From NCBI GenBank assembly GCA_047495785.1, contig JBLDXI010000018.1, forward strand, positions 62,001-126,000: a stretch of 64,000 bases of DNA, read 5' to 3'. This DNA comes from Lepidodermella squamata. Taxonomy: Eukaryota > Animalia > Gastrotricha. A program made the translations under genes and the position numbers. The notes below the pieces were generated by a model. That model was given only the letters and a program-made list of their open reading frames with translations, made no database searches and was not told where the DNA came from. Below are positions 6,557 through 46,499 of this stretch, one piece after another; within the stretch, counting starts at the first letter, position 1, and each line of letters opens with the position of its first letter.

Positions 6557-6712
6557 CAGGGATTTGAAATTGACTTGACTTGACTTGAGCCCTTTTTTGA
6601 ACGACTTGACTTGACTTGTGACTTGAAATTTCATGGGGGGAATGGACTTGACTTGACTTGGCCTAATGGTTGAATTGATGTCAAGTCACATCAGGTCATT
6701 TCAAGTCAAAAA
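6557..6712. repeat. (GACTT)n / (AAGTC)n repeat element fragment
   Basis: Several ttgacttgacttgac runs followed by inverted caagtca units; typical of a non-autonomous DNA-element end. Confidence 0.6.
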
Positions 6713-7077
6713 GTTGATTTACCCCCGGTTCCAACTGCAAATTCGACGAAGTCGGCGAAAAAACACCAAGTCCGTTTTTATCCCCTGGTTGCGCAATTAA
6801 TGTTGGGGGCTGCACGAAACTAATGGTGACCTGGAATTGAGCGGCAAGGTTGAAGACCCTCGTTGCCGGCGATATTCACCTCTAACACTGCTCGGCAACT
6901 CCGCGGGCCTTTACTGTATAATAACATCGTATGATGATTTTGCAGTGTGAACGAACATTGCAACGCTTAATTCCAGTGGAGCATTGCGCGAAGTACTGGG
7001 GGTAATGAGGGGTATCGTACCCCCAGTTCTGCAGGCAAAGGTGGATGAAACCCAAAAGACCACAGGGGGGACCTTTT

Positions 7078-7146
7078 GGTCATAAAATGTGAGCCCAAAA
7101 ATACCCCCTAGTTCGAGGATCCTACTTCGCGTACTGTTGTGGAGTA
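7078..7146 (+). repeat. Dispersed repeat fragment (gaggatcctacttcg family)
   Basis: cataaaatgt..g..caaaaata.cccct.gtt.gaggatcctacttcg recurs at ~22795-22857, with a second core at ~22740. Confidence 0.6.
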
Positions 7147-21920: not shown

Positions 21921-24900
21921 TCAACATTCGCCGACAAATAGCAAATACTCGCGCATTTTCTCGTCGCCGATCGACTCGCAGCGAGACAGCGCAGCCATAG
22001 CCGCCATCGACGGGACAACGCTTGATTTTCGAATAACCCGCGGCTGATGGCTGAATTCATCTGAAGAAGATGAATCAATAGCGATTTTCCTCTTGTGGCG
22101 AGTTCGGTAGACGGCTCGTTTCGCGAGCTCTTTAAGCCCAGTTGACGATGAGCTCGATTCCGTGAGCATTGCTAGTTGCTTTGAATCGATCAGCGTGGCA
22201 GTGGAGGAAGATTTCTTGCGTCTTTGAGCTGCTTCTGGCAGTTGTTGCAGGCTTCGCTTCGATGGCAGTGTCTGGTAGAAATCTTCCGAGGTTGATTGCG
22301 TGAAGTAGGTTGTTGTGCTGCTTCTCATCATGCCACAGCTTGATTCGTCCGGCGAAGGGAACGACGTTAACAACAGAGGCTCGTCATCAATCTATTTGAG
22401 CACACAATGTAAAGCATTAATTTCACAATTCGATAATGGTCATAATGCGAACACAGCAAACGTTACTAAAGCAGGAAAATGTTCATTCAAAGGGTTATTC
22501 GGCTATTGAAAGTGTCGGTGGGGAAGTTTTAGCATACGACGGTATTTTTAGGATTAACCGACGTTAAGAAGAAAGAGAACACATTTAAAATCACCGTCAT
22601 AAATTTCGGAAAACTAATGAAATACCTACGGTGTAAAGAATTAGAAAATCTCAAATCTGAAAGCCTCTCAGATTTTTGGGACCCTTTGGTTTTTTCTGCC
22701 GAGTCCTAGAAAACAAGTAGTAGAAAACACCTCAGCTCCCGGATCCTACTTCGCACACCGCTTAAGGCAAAGGAGGAAACCCCCTAAAACCCCCCATAAA
22801 ATGTTGGGTCAAAAATAACCCCTGGTTTGAGGATCCTACTTCGAAATGCGTCAGGAGAAATAGCGGTAGAATATGGGCATGAGCGAAAGTAAAGATCGCG
22901 TTCAGAGCTACAACGGAGATTCAATTGAAAATTGAAGCTAAAATTTTCGGTTGAACTTGAAATGCAAGAAAAGATTACTTGAATTTATCCATGCACATAG
23001 AAGAGATAGGTTTATAGGTTCAACATCTCATCCAACCAATACGACGTAGACAGGTGTTACGAGGTGAGGAAAAAAATGGGTGAGGACAGACATGGGAAAC
23101 GAACAACACTGATGTACCTTCAAAATCTTTACATATAGAACCGGGATGTATGATAAGCGCAACTTTTCCATCAATACGACGCCTATAGTTGTTTTTCCCA
23201 CGAAAAGTAAAAAATATAGTTGACATTATCCATAGATTAGCCTGCCATCAAATAAGTTACCTGGTAGGCAGGTGGTCTCAACTGCTGACCTTGATCCCTT
23301 CAAACCAAAAACAAACGCAGAATTAGCGACTAGGTCAAACTAACTTTTTGCTCTAATCTAGGGTCATGTCCGGCTAGTGATTTCGATCGAACAGCTGCAA
23401 TAGGGGCATCGCGGTGGTAGGCGGCCCATGTGAATAGCCGCCGCCTTTCGAACGGTTTTGCCGTGCCCTTCCGCAACGAAAGACTTTGCATTCAAATAAG
23501 GGTTAGTCATGCAACATTGCACTACAACAAAATATTCGGAGAAAATGTGTAAAAACTTGCCAGAAACAAAACGCGCCGATGGTCGCGAAAATGACTATGC
23601 CAACCATAACGCCGACGACCAGCCAAATCCACCAGGCCCACATGTTCTCGAGAAACGCGGCCCAGCCCGTATCCTGCGGCTCGCTTGTCGTTGTATGATC
23701 TATGGCGCCGAAGCCAACGCTAGTGCTTGGAACAATGATTATCACAGCTGATGAATTGCCGCTCGCCGCCGGCTTCTCCTCGTCCTCAATTATCGGCTGG
23801 TACTCCCTCTCGCCGGACGAGTCTGTTGGAATAGCTGTTGTAACAGAATGATGCGTCGTCTCTATCAATGCTGGCTGTGGAGTTGAGGTGACTTCCAGCA
23901 AATTTTCTACCCGCCCAGCCGTCGAAATGAACTGGCTATCAACCTCACTAGAGCTACTTGTAAGGTCCTGAACTGTACTGAGGATCCTAGCCGCTGTAGT
24001 TTGAACTACAGCTGTTGTTTCAGGTGAAGTAGTTGTAGTCACCCTGGTAGTTGTTGTCTCGATCGGAGCTGCGGTAGTCGCTAGAATATTACTACTCCTC
24101 TTAGTGGTTGTTGTAGAAGTTCTCAGCGTGGTATTGATGATCATAGGCATAAAAATCGGCCAGATAGTTCTGGCTTGAGTTGCCTGCGTTAGTGTCGTGT
24201 AAATCGGAACGACAGGCGGTGCTTCTGTAGCATTCTGCCCTGGAGCCAAGTTGTTAATAGCCCCAGATTGTAAAAGCGGAGATTTCGTTTTCAGTTGCGG
24301 CAGGTCTGAAGAGCACTCGCCAACAGTAACGTTTTTGAACAGAATTATGCGGGTAGACATTTCCCTCGAGCTGCTCATGTACCGGTAAGGCCAGGAAGAT
24401 TTCAGTAGAGCTGAATGATCATCGCCAACTACAAGGACTTCGTAAAGAGCCAGGCCGACTCGGACCCGGCGTTGGTCCACAGTGCGGATGAGATCGAAAT
24501 TGACTGCTAGTTGGATGAGACCTGTTGAAGAGTTGAAATCGAGGACTGAGAACATATTCCGCCACGAATGGCTGTGCTGCATCGCCGTCATGTCGTCGTA
24601 GAACGTTGAGTATCCGTTGTAGGTTACTTGGATGAAGTGGACGTGAAAATTGGCCAGGATCGAACTCATAAACTTATCCCTTAAAATAAGAAAAAAGTGA
24701 TTAGTTATTGTGTGCGCACTAATTAGCCCCAAAGAGTACCGGCGCGCACTAATTGATGCAAATAAGGTCACGTAATACAACCGCAAGTAAAACCCAGGTT
24801 TGTAACCACTTGTTCGATAGCTCTTAATGAGGTGAGTTCATCGAATTAAGACTCACCTGTCCTTTGAGTACAAGGAACGAGTTGCATTAGGATCTCGAGG

Positions 24901-26330
24901 CACAATATGCAGAAGGCAGTGATTAAGCGGTAGGCCACCCTTCTCGTGGCCAATAACGAGGTAGACATCGTCTGATTGGTGTAAATTCGGGTTCTGCATC
25001 AACGCTTGCGTTGTTTTATCAGTTTTCAGCCTCAATTCAGCCTCCGTCAGGCCAGGCGATCCTCCCGAGGCCTCTTCATCCTCTTCCGCAGAGGTGGCAG
25101 GGGCTTCCACGGTGTAACCAAATGTTTCAGCATCATTCTGCTGGAAATTGAAACTGCCCAAGTTGTAGAATGACCCACCGCCAGCTGAGTGATTTCGATA
25201 CATTTTGTAAACAGTCCCGCCTGTCCGGTCGTAGTGGTCGAACATATCGGTGGTAGAGCAGAACGGACCCGGTAAGACTAGGGTCATCATTAACTGAGAC
25301 ATGTTGTTCTTCCGCTCCGATGCGTGGCTAACCTCCATGCCACTGAAATCAGCCGCTCGAATAGAGAACCAGCAAGAGTTGACCTTCTCCCGATCTCCGA
25401 CACATTCCCATAATTCCGTGGACGTGTTGTAGATTGGGAAGTAAGGATTATCGTGCCGATTCAGCTTTCCATTCGCGAAAAATTCGTGGGAGTAACGACG
25501 GGCTAATTTAGGGTCGTTGTAAGGGTTCTTCTTTTGAACGCTCATTGTGTCCTCATCGTAGAGCTCGTGCGGCGCTTGTGTTGGGTCGAAGCCGCAGAAT
25601 TTTGTGCGGTTCGATGAGGCCTGAAGCCGTGTTGGCACAATGAAGGACCCGGGTGCGCACTGAATGTTGATTCGCCACACAACGTGACGCGCCCATGCGC
25701 ATCCAACCGGCAGTATCACTAAAAATGTTCGATAGAAGGAAAAAGCTTCAAAACTCTGGGGGAACAATGAAGCCTATTCTGGAACTATAAAATTTTCTGA
25801 AATTCTCAGATTTTCAGGTGGAAGTCTGGTTCGATTTTTACTACAAGACAGTAGTTGCTATTTCTTTTAAAAAATATTGGAACTATGGAACTGAAACTGG
25901 AGTCTTTCCAATGCTTTGTTTGAATAGATATTAGATGATCCCTACAACTTCCGCTCTATATTCCCAATCCATCCCGTCTTGCCTTTTCCTAGAATCCCTT
26001 TAATTTTCACTTCAAAAAGGTCGCATTCCAGGCCATTTCTGATTGGATGTGCGTCTTAATTGTATTTTCCTAAAAATTTCTAGTTCTAAAATTCAGCATT
26101 CAGCCACGTTTATGCATGCCGGTTCTTAATTGTTTCTACCTCGTCCTAGGCTTTTTCAAAAATTTTTACAAAAATGTCTCCATCACCTGTCTCCATAGCT
26201 TTTTCGCAGTTAACTTACGTATATGGTCGTATTTCCACGTAACATTGATGAACCTCTCCTTGACTTGCTGATCATTAGCTCCAGCGTGACCGACAATAAA
26301 TACAGCTGCCAGTATTGCGAAAAGGGCCAT
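21921..26330 (-). CDS. Uncharacterised type-I membrane protein D1 (conserved ectodomain, Thr-rich mucin stalk, TM, Ser-rich tail), ~900 aa
   Basis: Exons 26219-26330, 24857-25718, 23561-24679 (GC donor), 23345-23483, 21921-22391 splice in frame. A further micro-exon near 23261-23300 is possible, so the tail exons are less certain. Confidence 0.8.
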
Positions 26331-29300
26331 TTTGAAAGAAGAAGAGCATGAAGTTGATATTGACAATCCACGTATTCGAGCCGGCGGCCCAACAGATGAG
26401 CTAGTAATTAGGCGCATTTTTTCAGCTGAAATAAACGCCCAATTTGTACAGATTTCTCAATTCATTTTTTGAAACAGAAGCATCTACAGAAAAAATTCAG
26501 AATTATATAGTGTCCCAAAATTTGGCCTCTCCTCGAGTGGGCAATTCGTGTCATTAATTAGCTATTAAATTGAACTAAAATTAATGAGGGATGGCAGAAC
26601 GATGAAAACAAAAATAAAAGCGATAAACAAAAACAGGAAACAATATTGTAGAAAAGCGTTAAAAGTATATTATAATATTGCTGTCAATAATAACTAACTT
26701 GAGAGGGACATTTTTCACAGTTGAACGATCGCCACAAAACAAGTGAAAATCGCGTTCCGTCCCCGCGCGAAAAAATCTCGGGCGATACACATCATCGCAA
26801 AAGTTGACAGCGCGTAAATTTGCGCGGAAATAGCCTTAAAAATCTTCATTTTCTTCATCGACGTAGTATAAGGATTAAATGCAGAATATTGCATATATGT
26901 ATTTGTGGTCAAAATATGCGCGCGCTCGCTGCGAATGCATGTCCTATGTAACATAATATTATTACGCTAATTTTATACTATTTTTATTTATTGGTTTTTA
27001 TTTTTATGTCCGCCGCTTGCCATTTTTGTTGTGCCGACGCGCGATCAATTTTTATTATTTATCATCGTACAGGCAGAGGCGATGAATAAAAAATTTTCAT
27101 GTCCACTATTACGCGAAACGAGCGACATGTCTGCGCATCAATAATAATAATAATAACAGTGATAAATAAAATGAAAAATAATGGCAATAATCGTAAAATG
27201 TATAACAAATCGCTTTTAGGATCAAAAGTTGCGGTCAGCCGAGAAATCATCGCGTGAAACGATTATATCATGTTCTACTTTCCTTATTTTCGCCGCATAT
27301 ATACATCATGTAGTGATGGTTTATCGTCGTTGCCAGACGTTTCAATATCGGTCAAATCGCCAGTGACATTTAGTCATAGGCAGTGAAAATACATCAAATG
27401 TATTCCTTACCCTGACCCTGACCCTAACTCTTACATACGTAAAAAATTAGCTTAAAGATTGAAAATCGATATTTCCAAATTTTTCATTGTATTTTTGGCT
27501 AGATTTTGGCTTTCGACATTCAAAATATCAGGAAGAGTCTAATAAATTATTCAGATTTTTTAGGAAGAAAGAAACTAATGTTTGATTGAAAAAAACACAT
27601 ATGGCAGATAAATCCTAACTGCTTGCCCTAAGACACATAAAGTTGAGAACTAAGGATAGCTATTGTTTTCTAATTAAATATTGCATTCGTATACTAGGGT
27701 GCTAACGAGCTAGTTAAAAAAAATTGAAATTAAAAGAAACTCATTCATTTCCAACATGCCAGAAAATTGTGGCTTGCTGGGACATCCGAAATATGAGGAA
27801 TTCTTCATTCCCATTTAGTTCACTGACCTATGGTTACTCCGCAGAACAACAAAATTAGGTCATTTCCTATAGTTGCATTTATCGTCAAACAACTTTTACT
27901 ATTTATGGTATCAAGTAATCCCGATAAGAAAATTCGAAATTTGAAAATCAGCGAACGGATTTGAGTTACTAATATCGAATCGGTGGGAATTTCTGAGAGG
28001 AAAGGACATAATGACGGGCAACATTAGCCAGTTTTTGTCCTGAGATTAGTCCATTTTTTAGCGAATAGTAATAAATAAGAACTCACAATTAAGACTATAG
28101 TCGGTCACGTTTTTATGAAGCGTAAAGGACATTCATTTTGAAAAGTAATAAAAACCGCGTTGACCAACTTAATTAGGTCATCCTAGGCCGCTTTTTTGCC
28201 GCCCATCGCGAGCCACTGGCTATATACAATAATGCAGTTAATAAATTTTTCTATAATATGTGGCTCTAGATCAGCGGGTACAAAAATGTTAGGATATGAA
28301 AATGTAATTTATAGCCTCTACTATCTATATAGTATATAGGGGGATATCTACTGAAGCTATATTGTAGTACCTAGCTATTAGGCGAAAAAACGCCAGAGAC
28401 ACGCACACGGGACATTTCCTTCCGCGTTCATTTTTCCCGAAAAAATTACTTGCCTCATAAAATAAAGCGTGATAAAATCAATTTTTTAACGTAAAAACCG
28501 AAATCCTATTAAAAAGGAATTTTCCTGAGGACCAGAAAAAAATGATTAAAATCAATAAATAATCACGCGGCTTGTGATTAAATTTTACTTTCATGACGCC
28601 TCATATACTTTTTTTCTGAGAAAAATCTCAGGCTAAAAAGGCGCCGCCCCAACTTTTGTACTAATATATAATCGGAGCGAGCCTGGATTTTTCACGCGTA
28701 TAAAAAGAGATGTCAAGATGGCAAATTGAATAGCGGCGCGTGAAAGTACTAATTAAAAAAATCTCACTCAATTTAAAAGTTGAATGCATCAAAGTCTCAC
28801 ATTAATTCACGGGTTATCAAGAGAGGGAAAAAACTTATTATAATCAAGTCTTGTAGTTGATATGAGAACACGGCTTCATATACCTATCGAGTATTGGGTT
28901 ACGATGCGCAGTATGTAAATGGTAATAACGATTGTTGATTATTACATGAATTGGAACAACAAATTGTTCAGTGTAAGATAACATTAGCGCGGTTTTTTCC
29001 ATCATCAAGGGCCTAAATTGCGCCTGTTCAACATCTATATCGCAGCACCATTAGCAACGGGTGTGCGTAAATCATTAGCCAAGTACCTTGTATTAGGGAT
29101 AATTGATGTAATTACTGCGTTCTAGAAAAGTCTGGAAACATAGGACTAAGCGCAACGTATATTTTCAAGGCATGATAAAAGTATATTACAAATTTCGAAA
29201 TTGTTATGATTTGATTTAAAACCTTTCCAATTGGAATTTTCCATTAATTTCAGGCGCCATCCGCTGTATAATTGAGATATAATTTTGTCTTAACAACATA

Positions 29301-32300
29301 ATTCATCAAACTGAAAGAGAATTCTCATCGATTCCTAGCCTATATGGGAAATTTTTCTAGTTCGAGTATTCCTCTTTACTTATTTTAGGCCGATATCAGT
29401 CCATCCTCTAAACTTAACGATTTGATCCTATCTATCTCACTAAAACAGTAATTAAACGTCGCCATTCCTTTCCTTTTATACCTAAGGTCTTATAATCGAT
29501 ATTCATATTATTTATTCAATTTTCGGTAAGCCGAATATTTTGAAAGGTAATCAGAAATCCTTAATTTAGACATCATTTAAATGTTTTCATCTTCCTTATC
29601 CCAGAACTTGGCCGTTCCTATGTTGTCTAATCCTATGTTACAGCGTTAGGCAAGACCTCAGGAGAGTTCTAAAATTGGAAAATACTACAGTCCAAGCGAA
29701 TGAGGTTATAATTACCTCATGGCTTAGTTATCCAATATTCAAGTGCTTAATGAGTTATAGGAAAATTCGAAAAAAATGCACAAGAGGTTTTTTGGGGTCA
29801 CGGAATTGCGCCATTCATAAACTGTGGCCGTGAACGCTATAGCCGGAAAAATAGTTGTGATAAAATCTATCTCATTTTTCGACACGTTCATTTACATATT
29901 ATTTACAACAAAAAGCTATATTATTATATAACCAATCGCTATTGAGAAAATGAAAGTAGTATATCGTAGACGATTTAGGTTTGAAAATAACCGCATAATC
30001 AGCTATACCTAGTGTAATATTATTGTTTTAGGCTGAAATCGAGTGGAGTAAATAAATCGCCCTCGGCTTCGAACGTGATAATAGTGCCGAATTTTTTTTC
30101 GCCACGGTTTTACCATAAACAAATCGCCGGTGGTTAAAAACGGAAAAAGCGCACGCGCCCTTCTTTTTATGAGTAATAATAATAATAGACACACCTAATG
30201 TAATGATAATATAATAAGGACCAAAAAAACCCTGAAAAGCACGCAAGCAGATCTAAGATCATTATCTGATGCTTGATCAACCGCGGAAATGAATAAAGTG
30301 TTAGCGTCCAGCAGCAGCAGTGAATTGTTCAACTGAAACGCGTTAAAAGCCGTTGTATGGTAGGATGAAAGCTGAAAGCTGATAAAAACCTCAACGCAGC
30401 AAAAAATGTTGAGTTGTTTTCGCGGCTTATTCCGATTTTTTCGCCTATAGATTATCGGTGTGTTTATTTTTTCTAGATAATAGCGCCCTATATACCTGTT
30501 TTAAGGTGTGGAAGGGTGATGAGTGTAAAGAAAATACAGGCATAAATACAAAGTGGTACAACAAGCGAAAGAGTTGTTGGCCTATTGCGAGGATTTCCAC
30601 CGAGCGAAAACAACAATATTATTTTGCGGCTGAATGTCGGTGAAAAATAACAATGTTTCATGAATGGTGAAAAGCGTAAATTGGGAAATATCAATTACAT
30701 AAAAATTTTAAAACTGATTGCTTTCTCCTTAAAAGCAGAAAAATAGGGAAAAATAGGAACCTTCGAGAACTTTTTTAAACATATTGTAATATATACCCAT
30801 AGTCTTTTGGAACTGAAATTTTGCTTATTCCTCCATAATTTGTTCATTTTCCCGATTTTATAAACCTCAATCTCAGGAAAATTAATTTAAAATGGTAGCC
30901 AGATCAATAGGAATCAACAATCGGGAAATATCGGGAAAAATACCAAAAATTACCGAACCTTTTACCAAAGGGTTTTCGGGTTTTCTCCGGAAAATTGTTC
31001 TGTAAAATTGCGCGGATGGTGGATGTGAGATTCCGGAGATTCCAGAAAAATAGTTACATTTTCCCCAATAAAAATATTTGATAATGGGACCTTTTTCCTA
31101 AAAATAGTCTATAGTCCTACTCTGTGTTTTTCGGAAATTTTATTCCTCCCCTTTTGTCCCCATTGATTGGCCTTTTCTCATTTCTATAATCAAGGTTTCG
31201 ATATTATAGCCCAAGTTGGATTGCCAAAGTATTCCTAGACTATTTAGCTTCTCCATGATCCTGATCCAATATCATTCCTACTTCTATCCCTCTTCCCTCC
31301 TTTGGCACTGATTTACTATAATTAGCCTTTAACCTACATTACCACCCAATTCTGTAGATTTAGTGCGATTCCAGAGCTTTTCAAAATCTTCCCCGCTTTT
31401 TTCCTATTCTGAGATGATCTTAGTCCCCCAAATTATCTCATGCGACTATATACTTATCCCTTCTCTGCAATTCAGTGCAACTGACCATCTTCATTTTTTT
31501 CAATTATGCAAATCCTAACTATCCTATCCCATAGGATTATTGAGTGTATTCCCAATTTTTAGGGCATTTTCTTAGAAATTCAAATTCTTACAATAGGAAT
31601 AGGGTCGGCAACTTTTTGAACAGAAAAAAAGATTCCTTTAATTAGGTGCTAAATTGAAGGAGAGAACAAGAACGGCTCATTGTTGGTGTAGTATCTAATA
31701 CGGCTCAGAAGTGCGTTTATTTACCGCGCAATATAATTAACAGCAGCGTGCTCGAGTTCAAGGACAACAATCGCGTGTTTTTACTCGCCAGCGCTTAGCG
31801 ACATACAAATAGACTACTACAGACAAAGCGCAAGGGACCGGCGGCGTGGCTGCTGCTGCTGCAATCTCGGCGGCGGCTCGCAGTGTTCCCTACTTGCCTT
31901 ACCTTGGCAGACACTGCTTGCTGCTTAATACGAGAGCGCGTTGTTTGTAATAATTACTACAACAATTGTTATTTTGAATAATATTCTGCGTTCAAGTATT
32001 CTCATGGCACACCTTGTTATCGTCCTCGACATAGACGCGTGTTTTTGCCTCATAAATAAATAATTATTACTACTACATACTGCGGTTGTTCTTTCTGATC
32101 TTGAAATGCACCCGTCGAAACAAAACCGCAGAAGGAAAAAAATAAGTTTTATTTCGAAAAATTTCAATAAAACAATCCACGTTGTTCACGGACAGTTGTT
32201 GTTATAATATAATGAAAAAATCGAGGATTGGCAGTGCATTTTAGGGTTGAATATATGTTGGAAGCGGTGAGACGAAAAAATTTTGTCAGCAGCATATTTT

Positions 32301-32617
32301 TTTTACAATTTTTTCCAGATTTTTCCATTCGCGACTTTTTAGGCTTTTAGATAGATGAGCACAACCGAAGACGTCGATTTTTACGAGTTACAATAAATAG
32401 CTATTAATCGACAAAATAAAGATACACAAATTTCCGAGGGTCTATAATGTCTCTAATAGTAATATACATACGATCGAATACAAAGAATAGATCAAAATGA
32501 TGAATAAATTTGCACCGGGTAATTTTGCAGAGATTCGATTGGTTTGAAATCGGCTTTCATTTGATTGTCATCGTTTGCGTTGAGATTCCGCTGGTTGAAG
32601 ACTCGGGTCATTTTAGT

Positions 32618-35600
32618 TTATCGAGTGCTGGAAGAAATGAGGAAAAATTAAGACAAAAATGTAGAAGAAATTTGGGAAATTTAGGAATTTTGAGAAAATT
32701 TTAAATACATTTTCATTTTAAAATTTGATTTTTTATGGATTTTAATTTCCTAAATTAGAAAAAAATCACGTTCCCAACATTTTCATTTTTCAAAACTGAA
32801 GTTCGGAATTTCAAGGAGTTTAAATTTGGATTCGGAGATTTTTTTTGAATTTTTCAAATAATAGTTTGATTTGGAAAAAATGAATTCTTACCAGAAATAT
32901 AGGACGCCAATGCTTCCGAGAACCATAGCCGCAATAATGCCGCCAATAACGAGCCAAATGCTCCAGAAACACAGCAGGCCGCACTCGGGTTTCGCCTCGC
33001 CCGACAACTGCGCCGCACTCTGCGTAGCCATCGACGAATTATTCAAGCGTGACGTGGCCTTGGTCGTCTCGCTCTTGACGGTCGTCATCGCGGAAGTTTC
33101 GGTTTTCGCCAATTCCATCGAAGAATCAACCGCCTGATTCTCCATCTCATCCGACGATTTCTCAACCGAACACCAGTCAAGCGTGACGTTTTTCAGTAAA
33201 ACGACTAAATGATGGCTGTAAGGCGCTAAATATCGATACGGCCATAGCGATTGAAGTAGGGAAGCATGTTCATCGCCGACCACGAGAAATTCGTAAAGGG
33301 CTACGCCGATTTGAACATGGCCGTTTGAGTTCGATTTTGTCGGAATTCGATCGGCGTCGAAATTTATCGATAGGTTGATCAGACCGGTTTCTTCATCGAG
33401 TGATTCGATGCTGAATATATTGCGGTAGCGAGCCGCGTGTTGCAGCGCGGTCATGTCGTCGTAGAATGTTGAGTAGTTGGATCGCCAAGTCGACGTACCA
33501 CTGTCTGGGATTATTTGGATGAAATTTACGTGGATGTTGGCGAGGATTGATTTTAGAAAATCGGCTCTGAAATAGAAAATAATATCGACATGAAATGCAT
33601 AAGTTATCCAGGGAGTTATTATTTAGTTTTATTTGGGAGAAAAATGTTTTGAACTCCAAACAATTAAAACAGGAATTTTAAAATTTTTGAAAAATGCATG
33701 GCGAAAATAAATTAAAAAATAAATAAATTAATTAATTAAATTATTATTTTAAATTTTCGAAAACTTTTTTCACCAAATGTCACTGGAGTTGTAAAATGTC
33801 GGTGCACCCACCGGTTACCTTCAATCTAGAGTTCCAGCCCTAATTTCTAGGTCCCAGTGCTACATTTTCCCAAAAAATGGAGGTTCAATAGGTTCAGTCC
33901 TATTTAAGAGGGCTGTGATCGTACATAAATAAAATTAATAACAACATTATAACGACGTTATAGTGCGACACAGAAAAAAATCTATCGTACACTTTTTATT
34001 GATGGTGCTATATTATTGCTTATTCTGCTGCTTCAATTGCATCCTTCACTACAGTCATTATCACTAGCTTCAGCATATCGTTTTCGATTAACGGGTCAAT
34101 CGAATCACGAGTTTCAAGATGAATGATAGATAGCGTGTTATTATCTAATTTTATCGCACACCTGCTACCTTTTAACTGGTATCAAACAGCTTTTTCAGTA
34201 CAATAAGAAGCTGGCATAACCGCTGAGAAATATTGTTCTCCTTTGAAAAATTCCACAATCATTCGATGACTTGAAATGACTTGAAATCTAGCTATTGCAT
34301 CTTTGAAAATGGCAGCTTTTACGAGGCATTTCAATATTATGCCAAATAAGGGGTGAGACGGTAAATTTGTCAACTTGGGGAAGACTAGTTTGTGATCAAA
34401 ATCACAGAAGAAAGGCATCAGAATACAGGTAGTTTGTGGCACTAAAAATGCGGCTATTGGCGAATTGAAAATTGAGTTAGCTTTTGGTAGTTTTTGTATC
34501 ACGATTATTTTTTCGAGAAAAATAGTAGAAACTAGCTTTTCAGTTTCAGCAAAAGAATTGGAACATCGCCTTGTGGCCATTGGCTATGCAGACCGCGAGG
34601 GCAGTGTTTCACCTGTGCGCGCAATGTCAAAATTTATGAATGAAGGAAATGACCTAAATGACGTGAATAACGTGAATAACGTAAGAGAATATTAGAACTA
34701 CGCAAACAGCAGCAAAATATCACAGTATTTTTTTGCTGCAAATAAAACTTAGCGCGAGCGATTTCTATTAGCGTTATAAGCAAAAAAAAATTTATAAAAA
34801 ATTTATTACTCTTTCGATCACAGCCCTCTAAATCAGTTAATTTGTTATGATTTTTGGAGAATTCCCAAATTTACAATTCGATGTCCTCACCTGTCTTTTT
34901 TCCATAGCCAAGCCGCGTATGAAGCATTTCTCGGCGTCAGGGTGGCTAAACACTTTTTCAACCTATACCCAACGCCTTTCGACTGGCCCTTAACCGCGAT
35001 GTGGACATTCTCCGACTGGTGAACGTTGAAGCCACTCGGCAGTTGGCTGAAAGCATCGCCGCGGTACCGAGTTGTCGCCACCGAGTAACCCTCTTCATCC
35101 TGCTTATCCTGTCTCGGCGATGAGGGCGTGAAGTCTAGATTGATGACAGGATCGTCCTGTAATTGAACTCCGCCACTGCCTTCACTAGGCTCCATCGATT
35201 TGTTGGAGAAATCTTCTGTTTTTATGGAGACCTCAGGCTGAGTGGAAGCACTGGACGGCTGTTTGATTTCTGTTTTGAATACAGTTCCGCCTGATCGGTC
35301 GAGATATTCGTAAGAATCGACTGTTGAACAGTAAGGACCAGGTAGGACTAATGTTGCAATAGCTGGTCTGTAAAATATAGACAGTCAAGGGAAAGTTATA
35401 GGATTAGGTTAGAGATAAGGCCAGGGATAAAATTTCAAATTGAAATGGCAACACGGCTAGGAATAAGGATCTCATTTGAATAAGGAAGCAAAACATATTG
35501 GAATTAGAAAAAATTGCCAAATAATAGGGACAAGACAATATCAGAATTAGGAATAGGTCTCATAATAACAGTTAGGTGGGAGTTAGGAATTAGGATTGAA

Positions 35601-38600
35601 GGCTATGGGTTATGGTTAGGATTAGGTACAGTAATCGAAGATTTTTCTCACAAAAAGATAGGATTTCCAGTAGATTAGAAGCCCGCTATTAGTATTAAAT
35701 AGGATTATTACCCATTGGCCTTTGTAAAGTCCTCAATTCCATCAGCACCGCCGTGAGAAGCTGGAGTTCCGATATAGTCATTCGCCCTAACTAGAAAAGA
35801 ACACCCAGCCGGCTTCGCCTCGCTTGTCCCATTTTTAACGACTTCATTCGTTCCAACGCAGTTCCAGTAAGACGTCGATTGTGAATAGATAGGAAAATAA
35901 GGCAGATCGTAGCGATTTATCTGGCCATCGCCAAAAATTCGAGACGACAGCTGGCGGGCTTGTTTCAAATACGCGAATTCGTTCGCTTTCTGGTGAGACA
36001 CGTAAGGCCTCGAGAACAGATCGTGTCGAGTTTGCGTATTTTCGCAGTAATACGAGCTGTTTGTTGAAGCTTGTAAACGCGTTGGCACGTAGAAATGGCC
36101 GATAGGACAGGCCATCCGGATGCGCCAGGTAACATCAGCAGCCCACGGACAGCCGACTGGCAAAATTACTGAAACGAAAAGAAAACTTCGAGTAGGGGTA
36201 TCTAATAAACAACATGTTTCGTTATCCTAATCCATACCAACCGCATATCAACTACGAAGGAATAATGGCCCGACAAATTCGGGCGCTTAGGCTCCACAAA
36301 TATGAACCATGAGTCGCAAGGTACATTGCCACTCCCCCTCCTCCCCTCCCGTACTTGGCGCTCTGTCGGCGATTCTTACGGAACCCCCAACTCTCCGGTG
36401 TCCCCTACATCGAATGTATTTTCAGCGAGCGTCTCCAAAGGCAATGTTGCAGCTGGCACTGGTCTTGAAAAACTTTGCCCCACCTTTCTTACAGCCTCGA
36501 CAAATTAAGGATAACCCTAAAATCGCTAATTGAATGCTGATTGCTGAATTGAACTTTCAACTTTCAGCCTTGAATCTTTGCAACTGGATGCCCTCAACCT
36601 GGTCGATCAGAACGCGGCATTGAAAACGATTAGGTTGTAGGTCAACCAGGCTGCGACGTGGCCTCTCTTTCAGACTTTGTTCCTATCAGTCGCGGAACTG
36701 GAGCAACATAAGCAGATGATGTGAATCTGCCGTGAGCGACTTCGCAGTAGAAGTGTCGCGGCTTGACAAGCTCACAATATGTATATACAGCTGGCAAATA
36801 ACGTTTGCAATACAGCTTATGGGTTGCCAATTTCTCCGCAGTACGTCACAACTTCCGTTGCTTATTTCAGCTGCTCCTGGCAAGTGCACCTGGTATTTTC
36901 TGTATCACGCGCTTGCACTGATTATCACTGTATACTTGTGTCACTGGGCAAATACAAATCTTTCAGAGGAGTTTTGCTGAAAGTCAAACAAAAAATTGAT
37001 CAAAACAACAGCTGATTTGAAAACCGGCGCAAAAAAACCGCCTGCATTGAGGGTATAAAATGGGCCTCTTCTCACACGAAATGTCATATTCCTCAAGTTC
37101 GCAATCCAATTCGACTAAATGGCTCACTTCAACCTCGCTATCCTCCTGTTCTGCGTTGCCGCCTGCAGCGCCAGCCCCTGTGCTCGCCAGGGAAACCAGT
37201 CTGGAGATGACTTCTCGGCTATCCTCGCAACTCTGCAACAAGCTCTGGAGACGTGCACAACCCAGGACATCGAGGCAGCCGTTGAAGCCCAGTAAGTGAC
37301 TCGTCTGCTCTCATCATACATCCAAGCTCCCTTTTGCAGGATGGACTTCACCCCTGTTGTCGAATGCGTTGCAGCCCACGCAGGGGAAGTTGTTGCCCAT
37401 TTCGCCCAGGGTAAGTAATCATTTCTGACTTCTTGGATAGTAAGCCATGTATTTATTCACAGCCCAGAACACTGACAACGCCACTGTTGTCCAGGCTGTT
37501 GCCGACGCCCTGAACGCCATTCTTTTCAACGGCTGCGACATCGACGCGGTCGTCAGCACTCAGTGCCAACTGCCTGAAGATCCTGAGAACGAGGAACAGG
37601 TCCTCGGATTCGTCGAGTGTGTCCGCGCTCTGTTCGCCGATGAGGATTTCGATGACATGTTCCCCCAGTGCGTGCCCTTCAAGGATGCTTTCAGTGTCGC
37701 CGCTGCTAGGGCACTGCCGACGTGTGACCTAACGAGCCCGTCGTGCATCATGCAAATCAGCGTGGCTACGCAAATGAACCAAGTTGTGAGCAGTATCGTG
37801 AGCACTATCGTTAAAAAAAGCAATACACTGGCTTCTGACACTATCAAGTATATGAAAGCGTAATCCTGCCGTTGGGCTGCCAGTTTCATCTGCAAACCGT
37901 AATGCGATGAGAGACATTTCAAGCATAATTATAATATATAATAATATACCGGTGTTTGTTAGGATTAAGACACGGGAGTTCGGGCAATAAACTTGAAGCA
38001 AATAATAATTGCGATGCCTTTTTGTAAAATGTATGAAATTTCGATGAGATTAAAGGTTACATATTCCTATTCCCATCTTATATCGAAAATTATCAACGTC
38101 TCGATGGGTACGTTTGCATACCTAATGCAACCCTAATAAAATCATTGCGGTCCTATAGATAACTCTCAGCTTTCGAATTCGCAATTTGTGTTTATTGCTT
38201 TCCCTATTAGGAATCATAGCTTCAATCTTCTCATTCCTGTCCGTATTTTAACTAGATTTCCTATGGGGCGGAAATATTTCACGAAATTTTAAAATTGCCC
38301 ACTCCTAAAGGCTCATCCTAAATCATTCCTATTTATATATTCAACGGAAACTAAGTCTATAATATTTGAAATATCCGTGAATAATTCAAGTCTAATTGTT
38401 CAACATCCGCAAAATGACCGAAAAAAAAGAAAATTGTTCCATTATTTTATGTTTGCCAACTTACTTGATCCTAATAAAGCTTGGGAGTTATTAATTCCTT
38501 TTTAACTAAATACTTTTTCAAAAATGAGAATTGTCTTTGGCTTTTTCTGCTGACCCGACCCACCGAAACTATTCCAGATTGCTGATATTACTGTTGATAA

Positions 38601-38774
38601 TTATCGCAATATTTTTAAACAAATTCAGAAGCGCTTACGAATGTGGTTAAACCGCCACTCGACATCGATGATTTGCGATTTCGATCCCGGCTGCTCGGTT
38701 GTGGCTGGATTCGCTCGAGTACCGCTCGAGCCGATTATGAGGAACAAAGCAGAGATTAAGGCGTACAATTTCAT
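32618..38774 (-). CDS. Uncharacterised type-I membrane protein D2, paralogue of D1 with almost no cytoplasmic tail, ~584 aa
   Basis: Exons 38639-38774, 35712-36168, 34891-35367, 32892-33566 and a putative 10-nt terminal coding exon 32618-32627 (..FCTR*). Shares ILPVGC.WA, VPTRLQAS, PYFPIY, LVLPGPYCST, YSTFYDDMTA, WPYRY with D1 and D3. Confidence 0.8.
33908..34828. mobile_element. Non-autonomous DNA transposon in D2 intron
   Basis: TIR gagggctgtgatcg (33908-33921) / cgatcacagccctc (34815-34828), TAA on both flanks. No transposase motif seen inside. Confidence 0.65.
37054..37060 (+). promoter_or_regulatory. TATA box of the nested gene
   Basis: TATAAAA ~65 nt upstream of ATG 37119; AATAAA at 37987 downstream of the stop. 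Confidence 0.55.
37119..37863 (+). CDS. Nested antisense gene: secreted acidic, probably helical, Cys-containing protein, ~214 aa
   Basis: Exons 37119-37291, 37340-37410, 37463-37863 (645 nt, both donors gtaagt). Signal peptide MAHFNLAILLFCVAACSA; strongly C/T-ending codons; lies in intron 1 of D2. Confidence 0.85.
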
Positions 38775-41700
38775 GTTAAAAATCGCTTTCGTACGGATGA
38801 CCCTGCTAATAACGGTCCCAAACTCGACAATTATTGACATCCATCAAAACTTGAAGTCGAAGAACGCTAAAATTTCTAAACGATTGCAGACAAAAAATAG
38901 CTATCTATATAAAATGTGCCAACATGAAAAAATATACGCGAAAAATCAAACGAAACACAATAGAGAAAAAATTACTACAAAGAGACATACGCTACGCGTC
39001 TATCGAGGGCATTTAGATCTGAGGCGAGAAATGCAAAAAATTTGTTCGCACTTAATGACAAGCAAATTGCTATGAACTGCCTATCAAAATCGCTAAATTT
39101 TTGTTGAATATTTGGGGATGAGGAAGACCAATAAATAGTAATAGGATTCAAGGTAATTCATTAGTCCGATACAAAGGATATTAATATTAGGATTTTATAA
39201 TATTTAAAAAAATCTAAACAGGGCAAGGAAATACAAGAGCGGGAAATCCTTGCGTAAATCTGTTTCGTTTCGATATTGATCGATGAAAGATGAATGAGGA
39301 AACTTTGATTGATGCCCAAAATATGGCCACTTTTTTAGATTTGGATATAATGGATATATGCTGCGCTGTCTTATGCAGGAAGGATCCTACGCGCACTCTC
39401 CCTCTCACATATGGCCACATCGCAATTATATAGCCTACGATTTGATATTATAAATATCAGGCGGTGCATGATCGAAAGGCGCCTCTGTTGTAATCATAAC
39501 AATAACCACGCCCCCTCGCTCATTCTTCCATCACCGCCTTTCAGTAAATATCGTAATTTTTGCGCGGCAAAAAATATAAATAAATAAATTTATTTTATTA
39601 CAATAATAGCCTATTCGTGTTTCGTGTTTTCAATCAAAACGAAGCAGGCGGTGTAATTATAACAAGTACAAGCGGCGGTCAGTGCCTTTTTAACACCGTA
39701 AGTGCGAGCCTATTGATAGCCGTCGCACAAGACACGTGTCGCGTGATAAAACGAGCCGGCGACGCCTCGTCCTCCTTTGAGACGTGTCATAATCATTTGT
39801 CGCGCTTCTTCAAGTGCGCGAATGAGCAATCTCCCGGGGCCGAATATATTGGTTTAATTCATCGTTTGGGGGCTTCATTAAAATTGGCCCATTCAAGGCC
39901 GAACTGATGCCAGCAATGAAACATCAGGGCAATGTTTCAAGAGCTTTGAACTTGGAATTATGAAACGTAGAAAAAAGTATAAAAACCGCCCTTATATTCG
40001 AATTTTCTTCAAAGTAGAAAATCAGAAAAATTTTTAAAATCAAAATTATAACTAAAATTCACAAAATAATCGTAAATTTTGTTATTGGTGACGTATTTTC
40101 GGACAAAAACTTGTTTTTGAGGTTTTAAAATCAGTCTGAATTCAGAAATTTATGAAATACGAGAGAAACGTGTGGAAGGAGATTCCTAACGTACCTGCAA
40201 ATATTGGTTATTTCACTTGATTTATGGTGATTTCAAATATTTTGCAAAAAAAACAATTGGATTTGCGGATATTTTTTTATCCTCATTTGCATTAATGGCA
40301 ATCTAAGCTCTAAGATTTATCGATCCTTGGATCAACTTGGAAGATATGAGGAGGTCCCAAATCGACATCTGAATCTGCCTTGCTTATAATATTTCTTAAA
40401 AATCAAGAATTACTCCAGTGACCTTGGGACTTTAGACATCTGACAGCCCATAATTCAACTAACTTAGAATAATATTTTTCAAGTGATTGTGTGTATAATC
40501 TAATATCATAGCCATTAGTCATTCCACGGCACTTAAACTAGAAACCATCTCTCAGAAGTTGCTAAAATCCCAAAAATTAAGTATTGAGTTGCTCTATCGA
40601 TTGCCAGAAGCCAGAATCAATAGCGGCCCAATCGTGTTAGGAATCACTCGGCAATAATTTAAAAATTTAACATTTATTTAATAAATTTGACCTAAAATGG
40701 GGTACTAATTGCAAATATTGAAAATTTAAAAAATTTGAAATTGAATCCTACAACTTAGCAGCCCTTGGGGAGAAACCTTTGTACTCAAGTATTTTCTAAA
40801 TTATCGCACAACTTGGCGTGGGTATGAAGCACTTATCGCAAAAATATCCTTTGGCTAAAAAAATTGCTTAGCAAGATAACTCCCGTTGTTGAATAGACCA
40901 GTTGATGATGTGATTTGTTAGCTACTACTAGAAAAACATTTATTTATCCGCGCATCAGGTCTGGTTCAGCGCAAATATTTATAATGCCCACCCTCAAGGT
41001 GCGGTTAAACCTGCGTATTAGGATAAGCACAAAAAGAAGCCGGACGCGGTGTTTATAGCTAACAGATTATTATTTACTGCATGGAACAATGACTTTTCGG
41101 GCGGTGGCATGATACTAAAAATCGCCACTGGGTGCTGATCCAGGGTGGGCGGAAAAAATTCCGATATCGGTATTTTTCGATATATTATGTATAAAACCGA
41201 TATTTTGTATATAGGGCGAAGATGAACAAGGTTTATATACTGGGCGGGCGTGTTTATAAGCCCAGTAGGGTGCATGCAAAAAATCAAGTGCTGCTACGGT
41301 TATAGTTACATCAAAGACCGAAACGGTTTTTTGATGATTACAGCAGTGATATGCCGTATAATAACCATTCGATATTAGGAAAAAAAGATGATATTCAGCC
41401 AGCCTCAATCAACGCAGAGTGCTTTTCGAGGTCAAGGCGAAAATTTTGCGCGAAAGGTGCGAAAATAATGGAGGTCACGCGAGGTCATAATAATTAAGCT
41501 GCGCATATCAGAAAAATGAGGTTAATTACTGGGTTGATTTTAAAAATCAGGAAAAATAACAAATAATTCTGGAATTTTCTGAAATTTATTCCTAATTTTT
41601 TTATTCTTTGAAATTCGAAAATGTGTTGTAATGAAGCGGGTTCTGAGTAATTATTAGGAAAAATACTATTTCCGATAGTAAGGCTGTTCATAAAAAAATC

Positions 41701-42613
41701 TTTGTTTACATAAAGCGCGTAAATTACGTTGGAATGAACGTACTCGCATCGAGTAATGGACTCCTGATGCGTAAAAAATAGCCTGTGTGGGTTCAAGATT
41801 CGCTGTTTTTTCCCATAATACTATACCAAAGGTGATTTTCCTGATGAAAAATTCCTTAGTTTTCTTTTCACCGAAATCGCACTTGGAATTATGCGAGCGT
41901 AAATTCAACCAATCGGGTTTGAACTCATCAAATCGCGCCGATAAGCCACAAGAAGATGAAAAAATAATAATAATAGCGTTTGGTCATCGTTTTTATTATC
42001 ATTACCGTAGTAGTAGCATATTTCCGCTCAGTGCGGTCGCCGCAATTGTCCAGTTTTTTTCGCGTAATTAAATAAGACTAATTTCCGCAAAAATACAGTA
42101 ACAACAATATCGGCTATCATTTCACGATGAGATAAATGAGGAGACATCGTTTAATAATAATTGAAAAAATAAATGATGTTTCAACAATAAAAATGGGAAC
42201 TGACCTTAAGAAAGAAAAACCATCGCGGCGATATAACGGAAGGAAAATATAACAATAGGCAAGAAAGGATAGGAATAGGAAGCACAGAAAAACATGTCTC
42301 TAGGGGATACAACGCGTCGAGATTTTTCCATCATTATCCATAATATTTTTGACAAAATTGTTGATTTTATCCGCGGATATTTTTTTTTGACAAGTCGAAA
42401 TTATGATGAAATCACTAGAGGGTGACGGGTGAAAAAAATCGATAAATAAAAGAATAAAATTGGAGTTTTGTTCGACCATTTTTCGCGTTCAACGAAGCGT
42501 GACGGCAGTGGGGATTTTTTTCCTTGGTATTAAAATCGATAAATTAGTAGCGTGATTTGATCACCGGGTTTTGAGTGACATTATGTAATAGTATAGAAAA
42601 ATTATAATTTATA

Positions 42614-45600
42614 TCAGACTTCGGTTATTCGTGCTTTATTCGGATCAATGTTGCAGTTGATGTAGTGCGTGCCTGCGATCACGAAGCCGGAGGTTGAGGG
42701 CGGGGGCGAATCGCGGTGTTGCAGCAGATCCGAGCCCATGAGCACGCTCGAGTCGGTGAGGAACGACATTTTTCGAATGTTGCGAGCTCGCGTCAAATAG
42801 CGAGACCGATACGGCCGGTTATAATGGCTGCAAAAAATAATAGAAAAATGCATAATATAATTTCGGGAGAATATGGCATTATCAACTGAGCAGGGAGCAA
42901 GAATAAACAAGCCGTCCGTTTAATAATCGAGGCAAAGTAGGAAAATAACTTGTTCGAAAAGCAGCTCTACATCTTGCATAAGGATTTTCATTCTTACTCT
43001 TCCTTCACTCCTATTTTACTGGTATCCACTTCCCCTATGCCTTTCCCATTTTCCAATTTTCCCATTGTTTCCCTTTCCCTTTCCCTTCCTATCATGTTCC
43101 CCTTTATTTTCCTTTCCTTGCCTTTTCTTCCCCACCTTCCCACCATCTTTCCCCTAGCTACTTTTAGCGATCCCTACTTGAACATTTGCGAATTAAAGGA
43201 TAGTCATGAGTTGTTGTAAGGGTTCCCAAAGATTTAACCCTACGTCTTGGCTTATTTTTCGCCTCATAAAATCCAGCTTCGATGCGAGTTCAAAAATTCA
43301 TCGAATAACATAATTTGCCCCTATAAGCATGAAAATGTGAGTAATTATTGCCGCGCCATCAACCTACAATTTCCAGCTGGATACATAAATTTGGTTAATA
43401 AAGCAGGTTTTAAACTTAAAATAATGAGAAGCAACAAAATGGATTCAATGCAGAAACTCACATGAGCCTCATTGTAAGAGGCTATGTTTAACGATTCCCT
43501 AAAATTGTAAGAACAGTTGCTGAATTCGCTCGGGTTATATCAGGATAAATTCACTAAAAACTTTCTTAGGAAATGGCTCTGAAAAAATCGGAAGAAAATT
43601 CGAAATTCGGCATTCTAAAAATTACGACAAAATTTCCCCTTCCACTTGAAAATTACCCAAAATAAGAAATCAAGTAAAATATAAATTTTTTTCGAGGACG
43701 TGCCCGTTCCTTGATATGAATATAAACGACTTACAAGAACATGAGAATTCCGATAGTCGAAAGGACCACACATGTGACAAAGGCAGAAACGGCCAGCCAC
43801 AGCCAGAAGCACCAAAAATCACGGCAAGCGAAGTAGTAAGTAGCCGCGTCGAAATCGCCATCGCCCTTGGCCAGCTGTTTCTCCTTGTCCGAAACTGGGT
43901 CATTATCGCCAATCATCGAATACGACGAATTGTCATTTTTTCGCCGATTTTTCATCAACGGCCCGAAATCTTCAAAGTCATTATTATCTTCCTCGAGGGA
44001 AGAATCGCGCCAGAAGTCACGCGCCGAAATGGGGTGGCCTGATTTAGTCGACTGGTCGCCACTATCGGATGTCGAATTTTGATCGGAAATCACGTTCGAA
44101 CAATACTGAATTGTCGCACTTCGCAAAAGCAGTAAACGACTCGCTAAATCACGAGACGGGCTGATGTATCGATACGGCCACGCTCCGTTCAACACGCGAG
44201 CTGTTTCGTCGCTGATGACTAAAATTTCATAAACTGCCAGGCCGATTCTAACCGGCTGGTCGTCATTTCTACGTTTAAGATGGAAGCGAAATGCGAGTGA
44301 AATTGAAGGGTCACTTGTGTTGCTATTGTCTGATGACGTTGTGTTATCTAGTTCGACGTCAATGAGGCGGAACATTCCGCGCCAGTACCGCCGGTCGTGA
44401 CTCAGGGCGGTCATGTCGTCGTAAAAGGTCGAATAGCCGTTGTAGACGACCTGCACGAAACCGACGTGAATGTTGGCGAGGAGCGATTTACGAAATTCGA
44501 TCCTAAAAATACAAAAAAATACGCTGAATGTTCGCCTAAATGATATAAGGATACTAAAATTAAAAAATCTTTCATTAGGTATTTCCTATTGGCAGTTCTT
44601 CGATAGAGAAAAAATTGGGGAGTAAGAATTTGAAAACCGATTATTTTTATCATTTCACGTTACGGAGAAAAATCAGCATGAATTTGATCACGTGACCTTC
44701 CTTGATGCCACACCCATGCGATTACCTCTAGTTAGAAAGCTCTCAAATAATATTTAGCTCGATGAGATTTATACATGATAAAAAATCTATCTTGGGGACA
44801 CTTTTGCGCAGATTGGTATAAGGTCCTAGCTCATCCCCAAACCTAAAGTCTACGAGGTATTTCTATTTTTCTCACCGAATTTTTCCGATTTTTCAGCTCG
44901 GAGATTCGCGCTATCGATCTTGCCAATAAGATTTTTTAACAATAAGCTGGTAACAAAAACTGCCAATAGGCTCTAAATGGGTCTCGGGCCGGAGAATTCG
45001 TTAAAATTCGACGTTTTCTAATTTGTTAAATTTTTCAATTTTTTCAGATGAATCTAGCCATGAATATATGGAACGGTACGCAATGGCTTCACTTTGATGT
45101 CGGACTCGTATACCACCTTTAGGGTTCTAGTATAGAGCCGATATCGATTACAATAATCAATTTCACAAATCAGTGATTTTACTAGATCTCAGCAGCTTAG
45201 GGAACCGCGGCCTAACTTCGAATCTCAGAAACAACGCTTCACAATCTCCATATATCTTAATAAAAATTGCTGAAATAATAAAGACGACTACATTATTGGG
45301 TCGATGTGCAAATTGGCCTTACTTGTTGCGCTTCCATAGCTCACGAGCGAATTTGACATCGCGTGGCACCAGTTTTGCGACGCAGTGTCCCATTTGATCG
45401 CCGCCGCCTTCCTCGTTATAATATCTCCAATTTGTATGCCGATTCTGCAAATTTTTCACGAGATACACGTTATCAGACCGGCGCAGCTGCGGCTTTTTAA
45501 TCAACAGCGCATTCAGGTCATTTGACCCGGGCACAATTAGGTCATCCTCGTAGTTATAGTCCACCGAATCGCCAATCAGCGATTTAATCGCCGATCCGCC

Positions 45601-46499
45601 GTTGAAACCGATTTTTTCAATCGAATTATTTTGGGCCGTTAATCTAAACACCGTGCCGCCACTTCGCTCGTAATGGTCGAAGCTGTCGACCGTTGAACAG
45701 TAAGGACCGGGTAATACCAGGGTCGCGAGATGCGAGTCGCCCAACGACGCCGGGCGATTCGAAAAATCAACCGATCGAATATCGAACTGGCAATGATCGA
45801 TTTTCGACCCGACGCAGTGCCAGTAATTCGACGTTGACGAGTTGTAGATTGGGAAATACGGGTAGTCGTGCCGGTTCGGCGTCCCATCGCCGTAGTGGGT
45901 CGACGATATTTGCCGGGCGTGTTTTAAATACGACAATTTATTAGGTAATTGTTGCGATTTTTCAGCGTTATTCAGGAATAAATTGGCAGTGGCTTTATCG
46001 CAATAGTGAGATTTGTTGGTTGAGGCCTGGACGCGGGTTGGGACGATGAACTGGCCGGTTGGGTTCGGGCATCGCATGTTGATCCGCCACGTGATCGATC
46101 GAGCCCATGCGCAGCCAACAGGTAAAATAACTATGGAAAAACCGGAATTAAATTATGTTTACCTGATCTTTAATTTTAAAATTTATAAAATAAAATCATC
46201 CCGACTTGTAAAATTAAAATAATCATTTTTGGTTAATTTTTGGGAATTTTTCAGATTATTTACAAATAATTTGGCATTTTCCTACATTTAATTGATAAAT
46301 GAGAATAATCAAGGAAAATAAAAACAATTGAGCTCAATTTTTTCAGAAATTAATGAAAAATCATTTATTAAAACTCACGGATATTGTTGAATTTCCACTC
46401 GACATCGATGACAATTTGTCCATCAGCTGCGATCGATCTTCGCCCGAACAAGCCCAAAAGTAGGACTAATTTAACGAAAATCGAACCTGGTCGGGACAT
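42614..46499 (-). CDS. Uncharacterised type-I membrane protein D3, paralogue of D1/D2, ~636 aa
   Basis: Exons 46379-46499, 45323-46130, 43735-44502, 42614-42827 (1911 nt, in frame). Signal peptide, family motifs, acidic stalk, FWCFWLWL-TM, tail ending ITEV. Confidence 0.82.

Follow-up and report, generated by a model that had tools for sequence, protein, structure and literature searches.

A tandem triplet of genes for putative type I membrane glycoproteins of an undescribed family in Lepidodermella squamata

Among the closest known systems to the genes described here are dystroglycan, MUC1 and the SEA-domain proteins, and EpCAM/Trop2, mucin-type type I membrane proteins that carry an alpha/beta module next to the membrane and a PPxY motif in the tail. 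Membrane-anchored pepsin-like proteases of the BACE type (PF00026, TAXi_C) are alike in having a signal peptide, an ectodomain of about 400 amino acids (aa), a single transmembrane (TM) helix and a short tail. We analyzed a stretch of 64,000 nucleotides (nt) from the Lepidodermella squamata assembly GCA_047495785.1 (contig JBLDXI010000018.1, positions 62,001 to 126,000), hereafter the window, in which three neighboring genes, A, B and C, encode predicted membrane proteins of this general build. No SEA or DAG1 profile match was found for them. Their likeness to the BACE-type proteases is a weak protein-language-model resemblance, whereas a Pfam or PDB sequence match, a DTG or DSG motif and a structural match are all absent, so the triplet is not a demonstrable member of that group. 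The results presented below support the view that the family is undescribed in every library searched, and the size and motif richness of its ectodomain set it apart.

The three genes and the build of their products

Genes A (26330-21921), B (38774-32892) and C (46499-43735) are intact and co-oriented on the minus strand. Their models were built from the open reading frame (ORF) listing and three-frame translation, followed by splice-site reading and assembly of the coding sequences (Table 1). Mutual tblastn of the exons (E 1e-33 to 1e-54, 30-49% identity) found exactly three copies in the window, and the full-length proteins are 37-41% identical in pairs, which bears out the tandem triplet of related genes proposed by the first-pass annotation. 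Apart from one GC..AG intron in gene A, the introns are bounded by GT..AG throughout, and their acceptors are T-rich and TTTCAG-like. Shared intron positions had also been claimed, and this holds for three of them: a phase-1 intron directly after the signal-peptide exon (..NHI / L-ILPVGC), a phase-2 intron separating the N and C halves of the ectodomain (..KDR/..LAN) and a phase-2 donor immediately 3' of the TM helix are common to A, B and C, but gene B possesses one additional intron of its own within the N half (35711-35368). The extent of gene A had to be refined: its TM exon is not the last one, and three further exons reach position 21921. The first intron of gene B contains a GC-rich block (36200-38050, 49% GC versus 35-40% around it) with ORFs on both strands, among them a plus-strand ORF of 138 aa (37447-37863) without a Pfam match, and this block may represent a nested gene or else an insertion. 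An Rfam scan of the triplet region gave no match.

The three proteins have the same layout, namely a signal peptide, an ectodomain of about 430 aa, a stalk of variable length, an aromatic-rich entry to the membrane and a single TM helix. The conserved blocks listed in the first-pass annotation were all found in the alignment, namely ILPVGCxWA..WRI, VPTRxQAS, NRxDxPYFPIY, WxCVG, LVLPGPxCST, RxGGTV, LANxHVxFxQ, YSTFYDDMTA, VGxAxYExLV and WPYRY, while the size of about 450 aa given there for the ectodomain proved slightly too large. When the three window proteins are aligned with three relatives, 87 columns are invariant, and eight invariant cysteines are present (44, 58, 79, 143, 153, 191, 305 and 447 in gene A numbering). 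The blocks are separated and followed by regions that vary strongly: the acidic loop from RxGGxV to QSxxVY is longer in B (87 aa) than in A (77 aa). Counted from the last conserved cysteine to the membrane, the stalk extends over 215 aa in A, of which 38% are Ser/Thr/Pro, over 86 aa in C, of which 22% are Asp/Glu, and over 52 aa in B. These lengths and compositions, together with a Trp- and Phe-rich membrane entry (for example ..ENMWAWWIW.. and ..FWCFWLWL..), agree with the earlier description of hypervariable loops, a stalk and a Trp-rich TM entry.

All six full-length models available, from the window and from relatives, have a hydrophobic N-terminal leader and a single C-terminal hydrophobic helix, and each contains 6-11 N-glycosylation sequons; in A, B and C the hydrophobic stretch at the TM position measures 27-28 residues. 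Inspection of the sequences thus finds a leader, conserved cysteines, NxS/T sequons and one TM helix, which together characterize type I single-pass membrane glycoproteins, and as a purely structural description it is very probable that A, B and C belong to this class. The proposal that they are cell-surface proteins is backed by the same kind of predicted features (signal peptide, sequons, the eight invariant cysteines and the TM helix).

Relatives, age and the search for a known fold

When 5.8 billion proteins were searched by word index, with each half of the ectodomain and a profile of the C half as queries, P0001 and P0002 alone were returned. These are the two exons of a single gene, an orthologue of gene A, which lies on the ENA metagenome contigs L001-L003. 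An exhaustive HMMER scan was made with the N-half profile against 1.84 billion 50%-identity cluster representatives, the C half being searched by words only. It found four proteins, all at E<=7e-57, with nothing weaker and none of them named: P0002 from the L001 gene, P0003 from L005 (a 1.1-kb Logan contig), and P0004 and P0005/P0006, which correspond to the tandem paralogues X and Y on contig L004. The profile search recommended by the first-pass annotation, made here with the N half of the ectodomain, therefore yields four unnamed relatives and no annotated family. A scan of JGI metagenomes with TFYDDMT-type patterns gave no true relative. L004-X and L004-Y are arranged in tandem, like the window genes, with about 2.5 kb between them. 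Both ectodomain halves of L004-Y (L004:6149-7441) are in one exon, the intron kept by all other members having been lost. The stalk is Thr-rich in L004-X and short or acidic in L004-Y. Introns of the relatives are nematode-like, 57-140 nt long with TTTCAG-type acceptors, and the L001 orthologue is neighbored by a Glyco_transf_92 gene.

In a maximum-likelihood tree of seven ectodomains gene A groups with the L001 gene (support 100/100) and gene C with P0003 of L005 (94/93), while B and the two L004 genes are left without resolved branching. Since A and C are each paired with a gene from another assembly, at least the A and C lineages predate the split from the organisms from which those genes come. 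Gene A and its orthologue share about 55% aa identity, at which synonymous sites would saturate, and selection was therefore examined on a close relative of the window sequence in the DNA run X1. In this sample, drawn from 40 of 95 differences, 38 are coding differences of gene A, 31 synonymous and 7 non-synonymous, and four of the latter fall within the stalk. This points clearly to purifying selection on gene A. Both the pairings in the tree and the excess of synonymous differences are in accordance with the earlier view of an old and selectively maintained family.

Searches for a known domain were made by sequence, by profile and by structure. Pfam gave no match for the window exons at E<=1 and none at E<=10 for L004-Y, P0003, P0004 and the C half of L004-X; a Zona_pellucida (cuticlin-type) domain was likewise not matched in Pfam by any of the exons or relatives. 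Sequence and profile searches of the PDB returned chance matches alone (all E>=0.16), and nothing was found in the literature on the motifs of the family. The possibility that the ectodomain arose by internal duplication of its N and C halves was rejected (hhalign probability of N versus C 0.1). An AlphaFold model of the whole ectodomain, with the single-exon L004-Y as reference and 13 further rows, reached a predicted local distance difference test (pLDDT) of 63 and a predicted TM-score (pTM) of 0.68, residues 220-345 reaching pLDDT 70-93; a model of the N half alone from five sequences was unusable (pLDDT 35). With the ectodomain model, Foldseek against the PDB gave a best E of 0.027 with TM-scores <=0.16, the ESM Atlas shape search TM-scores <=0.29, and BFVD a best E of 8.5e-3 with TM-scores <=0.15. 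The weak rows comprise beta-sandwiches of bacterial adhesins over approximately residues 160-385 and ferredoxin-like alpha+beta domains over 229-390, and they are read as generic resemblance. The first-pass annotation had recognized no known domain, and none emerged: there is no match in Pfam or in the PDB by sequence or profile, nothing above noise was found structurally in the PDB, BFVD or the ESM Atlas, and no confident full-length match to a characterized domain family came from any of these searches or from the HMMER scan.

Expression and cytoplasmic end of gene A

The public run X2, labelled "RNA?", contains 45% of the gene A words sampled. Its contig joint 26219->25718 excises a GT..AG intron of 500 nt, the joint 24856/24678 a GT..AG intron of 177 nt, and the joint 23560/23296 fits the GC..AG intron once the cut is moved by one base; further joints connect 23260 with 23181 and exon 5 with exon 6. 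Such joints, at GT..AG introns and the one GC..AG intron, together with nil depth over intron 1, mean that X2 contains spliced RNA. Transcription of gene A is thereby shown, and its splicing agrees with the prediction. Expression mapping had been proposed as a check, and for gene A these RNA-like contigs confirm the predicted exon boundaries.

In the observed mRNA of gene A the ORF passes from the TM helix into the mini-exon, which encodes DQGQQLRPPAYQ, and ends at a stop after three codons of exon 5. At this place (23170-23182, minus strand) the receptor stop overlaps an ATG (TGATG), which opens a second, conserved frame. This tail frame of about 175 codons lies on the same transcript, spans the splice between exons 5 and 6 and ends with ..MREYLLFVGEC at 21924; relative to the TM exon it is the +2 frame. 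Conservation of this tail in the L001 orthologue covers approximately the last 40 residues (52% over 42 aa by tblastn; E of the tail alignment 4e-18). The orthologue also has a counterpart of the mini-exon with identical boundaries (DLNANRQPIYQ), and in L001 a predicted acceptor brings the tail into frame. In gene A an inner donor in exon 4 (AAG/GTCAGC, 23290/23289) would restore the tail frame with the TM exon, and an isoform using this donor is predicted. The TGATG overlap could reflect either such alternative donor use or a stop-start arrangement.

Within the intron between exons 5 and 6 of gene A the depth of X1 DNA rises from about 80 to 5800-7100 at 22585-22898, many loose contig ends are present at 22719-22762, and there is no Rfam match. 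The jump in depth and the loose ends point to a high-copy dispersed repeat.

Table 1. Exons and other features of genes A, B and C in the window
Feature	Coordinates	Strand	Basis
Gene A exon 1: signal peptide with its ATG, then the conserved strand ..INVTWKYDHI; donor in phase 1	26219..26330	-	Sequence, splice sites, X2 joint
Gene A exon 2: N half of ectodomain, ILPVGC to ..SKD(R)	24857..25718	-	Similarity, X2 joint
Gene A exon 3: C half (LANFHVHF..YSTFYDDMTA..WPYRY), Thr/Ser/Pro-rich stalk, Trp-rich membrane entry, TM helix	23561..24679	-	Alignment, X2 joint
Gene A TM helix	about 23644-23561	-	Within exon 3
Gene A exon 4: 37-nt mini-exon with PPxY	23261..23297	-	X2 joints, reading frame, L001 mini-exon
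Gene A exon 5: end of receptor ORF in observed mRNA (..ASY, TGA)	23118..23182	-	X2 joints
Gene A exon 6: tail ORF to its C terminus and stop	21921..22391	-	L001 similarity, X2 exon 5-6 joint
Gene B exon 1: signal peptide, ..IIDVEWRFNHI	38639..38774	-	Similarity, splice sites
Gene B exon 2: N half, first part	35712..36168	-	Similarity, splice sites
Gene B exon 3: N half, second part, after the B-specific intron	34891..35367	-	Similarity, splice sites
Gene B exon 4: C half, stalk, TM helix, phase-2 donor end (TG/GTAAGA)	32892..33566	-	Similarity, splice sites
Gene C exon 1: signal peptide, ..VIDVEWKFNNI	46379..46499	-	Similarity, splice sites
Gene C exon 2: N half of ectodomain	45323..46130	-	Similarity, splice sites
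Gene C exon 3: C half, acidic stalk, TM helix, phase-2 donor end (TT/GTAAGT)	43735..44502	-	Similarity, splice sites

Several other loci of the window were noted, all on the minus strand. Just upstream of gene C, at 49152-51862, two long ORFs of 585 and 316 aa lie side by side and encode a Ser/Thr-rich, cysteine-containing single-pass membrane protein which is unrelated to the triplet and has sub-threshold Pfam matches only. For ORFs at 9943-10686 and 20177-20836, Pfam gave weak matches below threshold to neurotransmitter-gated ion channels, in their ligand-binding and membrane domains; one of these ORFs follows gene A directly on its downstream side. Within a dense run of genes, a trypsin-like fragment is found at 56331-57161 and an ORF with a rhodanese domain at 58660-59517.

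Possible function, alternatives and known systems

The explanation that we favor is that A, B and C are ancient paralogues of a lineage-restricted, undescribed family of type I membrane glycoproteins, and for its functional part, that they act as receptors or adhesion proteins, we see about an even chance. Such a role is plausible from the architecture. The protein would enter the secretory pathway and be displayed on the cell surface, where the stalk would hold the globular head off the membrane. The head, presumably stabilized by disulfides, would recognize a ligand or partner at a site formed by the near-invariant polar blocks (putatively NRxDxPYFPIY, RxGGxV, STFYDDMTA, YExLVxxD and WPYRY), with the acidic loops free to vary. 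In the A lineage a short PPxY or PxY tail may link the protein to endocytosis mediated by a ubiquitin ligase or an adaptor, and a possible longer tail with a terminal YLLF (YxxPhi-type) would be suited to endocytic trafficking. Taken together, these steps would describe an internalizing binding or adhesion receptor and not a signaling receptor of the kinase type.

A number of points weigh against this explanation. Surface location, ligand binding and trafficking are deduced from predicted features, the proteins may instead reside in an intracellular compartment, and the proposed function is read from the architecture. A polar block of ten residues, YSTFYDDMTA, is invariant although the proteins share just 37-41% identity, a pattern to be expected at a catalytic or cofactor site sooner than on an adhesion surface. 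The ectodomain model is only moderately confident (pLDDT 63), and the lack of a fold match is therefore weak evidence that does not establish a new fold. Among the three genes the evidence of expression covers gene A alone, and the one mRNA form observed does not carry the long tail in frame. The PPxY motif is confined to the gene A of the window, the orthologue reading QPIY, and a search by similarity to the gene A tail found no tail exons for B, C, L004-X or L004-Y.

A bolder version of the receptor explanation holds that the ectodomain is a new extracellular fold defining a clade-specific class of receptors, with a ligand or catalytic pocket formed by NRxDxPYFPIY, STFYDDMTA and WPYRY and with paralogues that may assemble as a hetero-oligomer; we regard it as rather unlikely, though not negligible. 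Because of the extreme conservation of the short polar blocks, an enzymatic or pseudo-enzymatic reading stays alive. The proteins may be membrane-tethered enzymes of another unrecognized type, for example ecto-enzymes modifying glycans or lipids, in which the invariant polar blocks would be the active site, and the charged and polar motifs (NRxD, RxGG, YDDMT..QH, YE..D and WPYRY) are indeed unusually invariant for paralogues so diverged. However, no enzyme family was matched by sequence or fold, and the long hypervariable acidic loops and the mucin stalk fit binding proteins better, which leaves this an improbable alternative. We consider it equally improbable that the family serves as a structural anchor of an apical matrix or glycocalyx, a membrane mucin without a specific ligand. 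The long Thr/Ser/Pro-rich stalk of gene A and the Thr-rich stalk of L004-X would suit such an anchor, as would the other mucin-like TM gene adjoining the triplet, but B, C and L004-Y have stalks that are short or acidic, and it is the globular head and not the mucin region that is strongly conserved.

Slightly less probable still is a highly derived pepsin-like protein, membrane-anchored and probably catalytically dead, with BACE-like topology and the C half as its C-terminal lobe. This lead came from the ESM-Atlas feature search, in which PF00026 Asp and TAXi_C clusters ranked top for the whole of P0005 (0.81-0.86) and first again for its C half alone (0.84-0.88), and type I topology with an ectodomain of about 400 aa resembles BACE. 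By eye, and as leads only, we take FYDDMTA to recall the aspartic-protease pattern hyd-hyd-D-T/S-G-T/S-S, and LVVGD, about 57 residues after it, presumably recalls ILGD or IIGR(N/D). Atlas scores below 0.9 are, however, likewise leads only, the shared features being few (107-137 of 256). Pfam Asp, TAXi and RVP gave no match at the thresholds stated above, the family had no PDB profile match, and DTG or DSG is absent from its alignments, where FYDDMTA is the closest look-alike. Foldseek, VIA-align and the Atlas returned no pepsin-like chain although the C half of the model reaches pLDDT 70-93, and hhalign shows no similarity between the N and C halves; on a bilobal fold of two homologous lobes the fold searches weigh less, since the model as a whole has only pLDDT 63. 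The pepsin-like lead is thus unsupported by Pfam, motifs and fold search. Finally, a viral envelope or fusion glycoprotein domesticated and duplicated in the host is very improbable: its type I topology, the sparseness of relatives and the Trp-rich stretch before the membrane, which we take to recall the aromatic pre-TM regions of viral fusion proteins, would fit, but the introns are conserved across three old paralogues and between species, flanking transposon or viral genes are absent, the model predicts no long heptad-repeat helices, the conserved blocks contain no furin-type cleavage motif, no structural similarity to class I, II or III fusion proteins was found, and the BFVD fold search gave nothing above noise, so that this origin is unsupported.

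For the favored explanation of a lineage-restricted family of receptor or adhesion glycoproteins, the consequences would depend on the head: if it is a new fold or a new ligand-binding module, one more family of animal cell-surface receptors would be added, together with a marker for an animal lineage hardly represented in annotated databases. For mutagenesis the strongly invariant polar motifs are clear targets, and clean gene models, size, motif richness and the lack of a fold match make the ectodomain a reasonable target for structural genomics. Practical value is modest at present, since this is one of many lineage-restricted families, but it is a well-defined one, expressed (gene A) and under selection. 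Such families are frequent in nematode clades that have been poorly sampled, and a specialist would be little surprised by this one.

Among known systems, the beta-sandwich adhesins of bacteria (MSCRAMM, antigen I/II and pilin types) score below noise, over model residues of about 160-385 only and at 8-15% identity, and as far as the model allows this is a generic beta-sandwich resemblance and no evidence of kinship. With the lineage-specific orphan membrane-protein families of nematodes the triplet shares the arrangement in a tandem cluster and the lack of relatives in annotated proteomes. In comparison with these, the triplet is distinguished by a cysteine-stabilized, motif-bearing ectodomain of 430 aa and by paralogue lineages, at least those of A and C, that have been kept between species.

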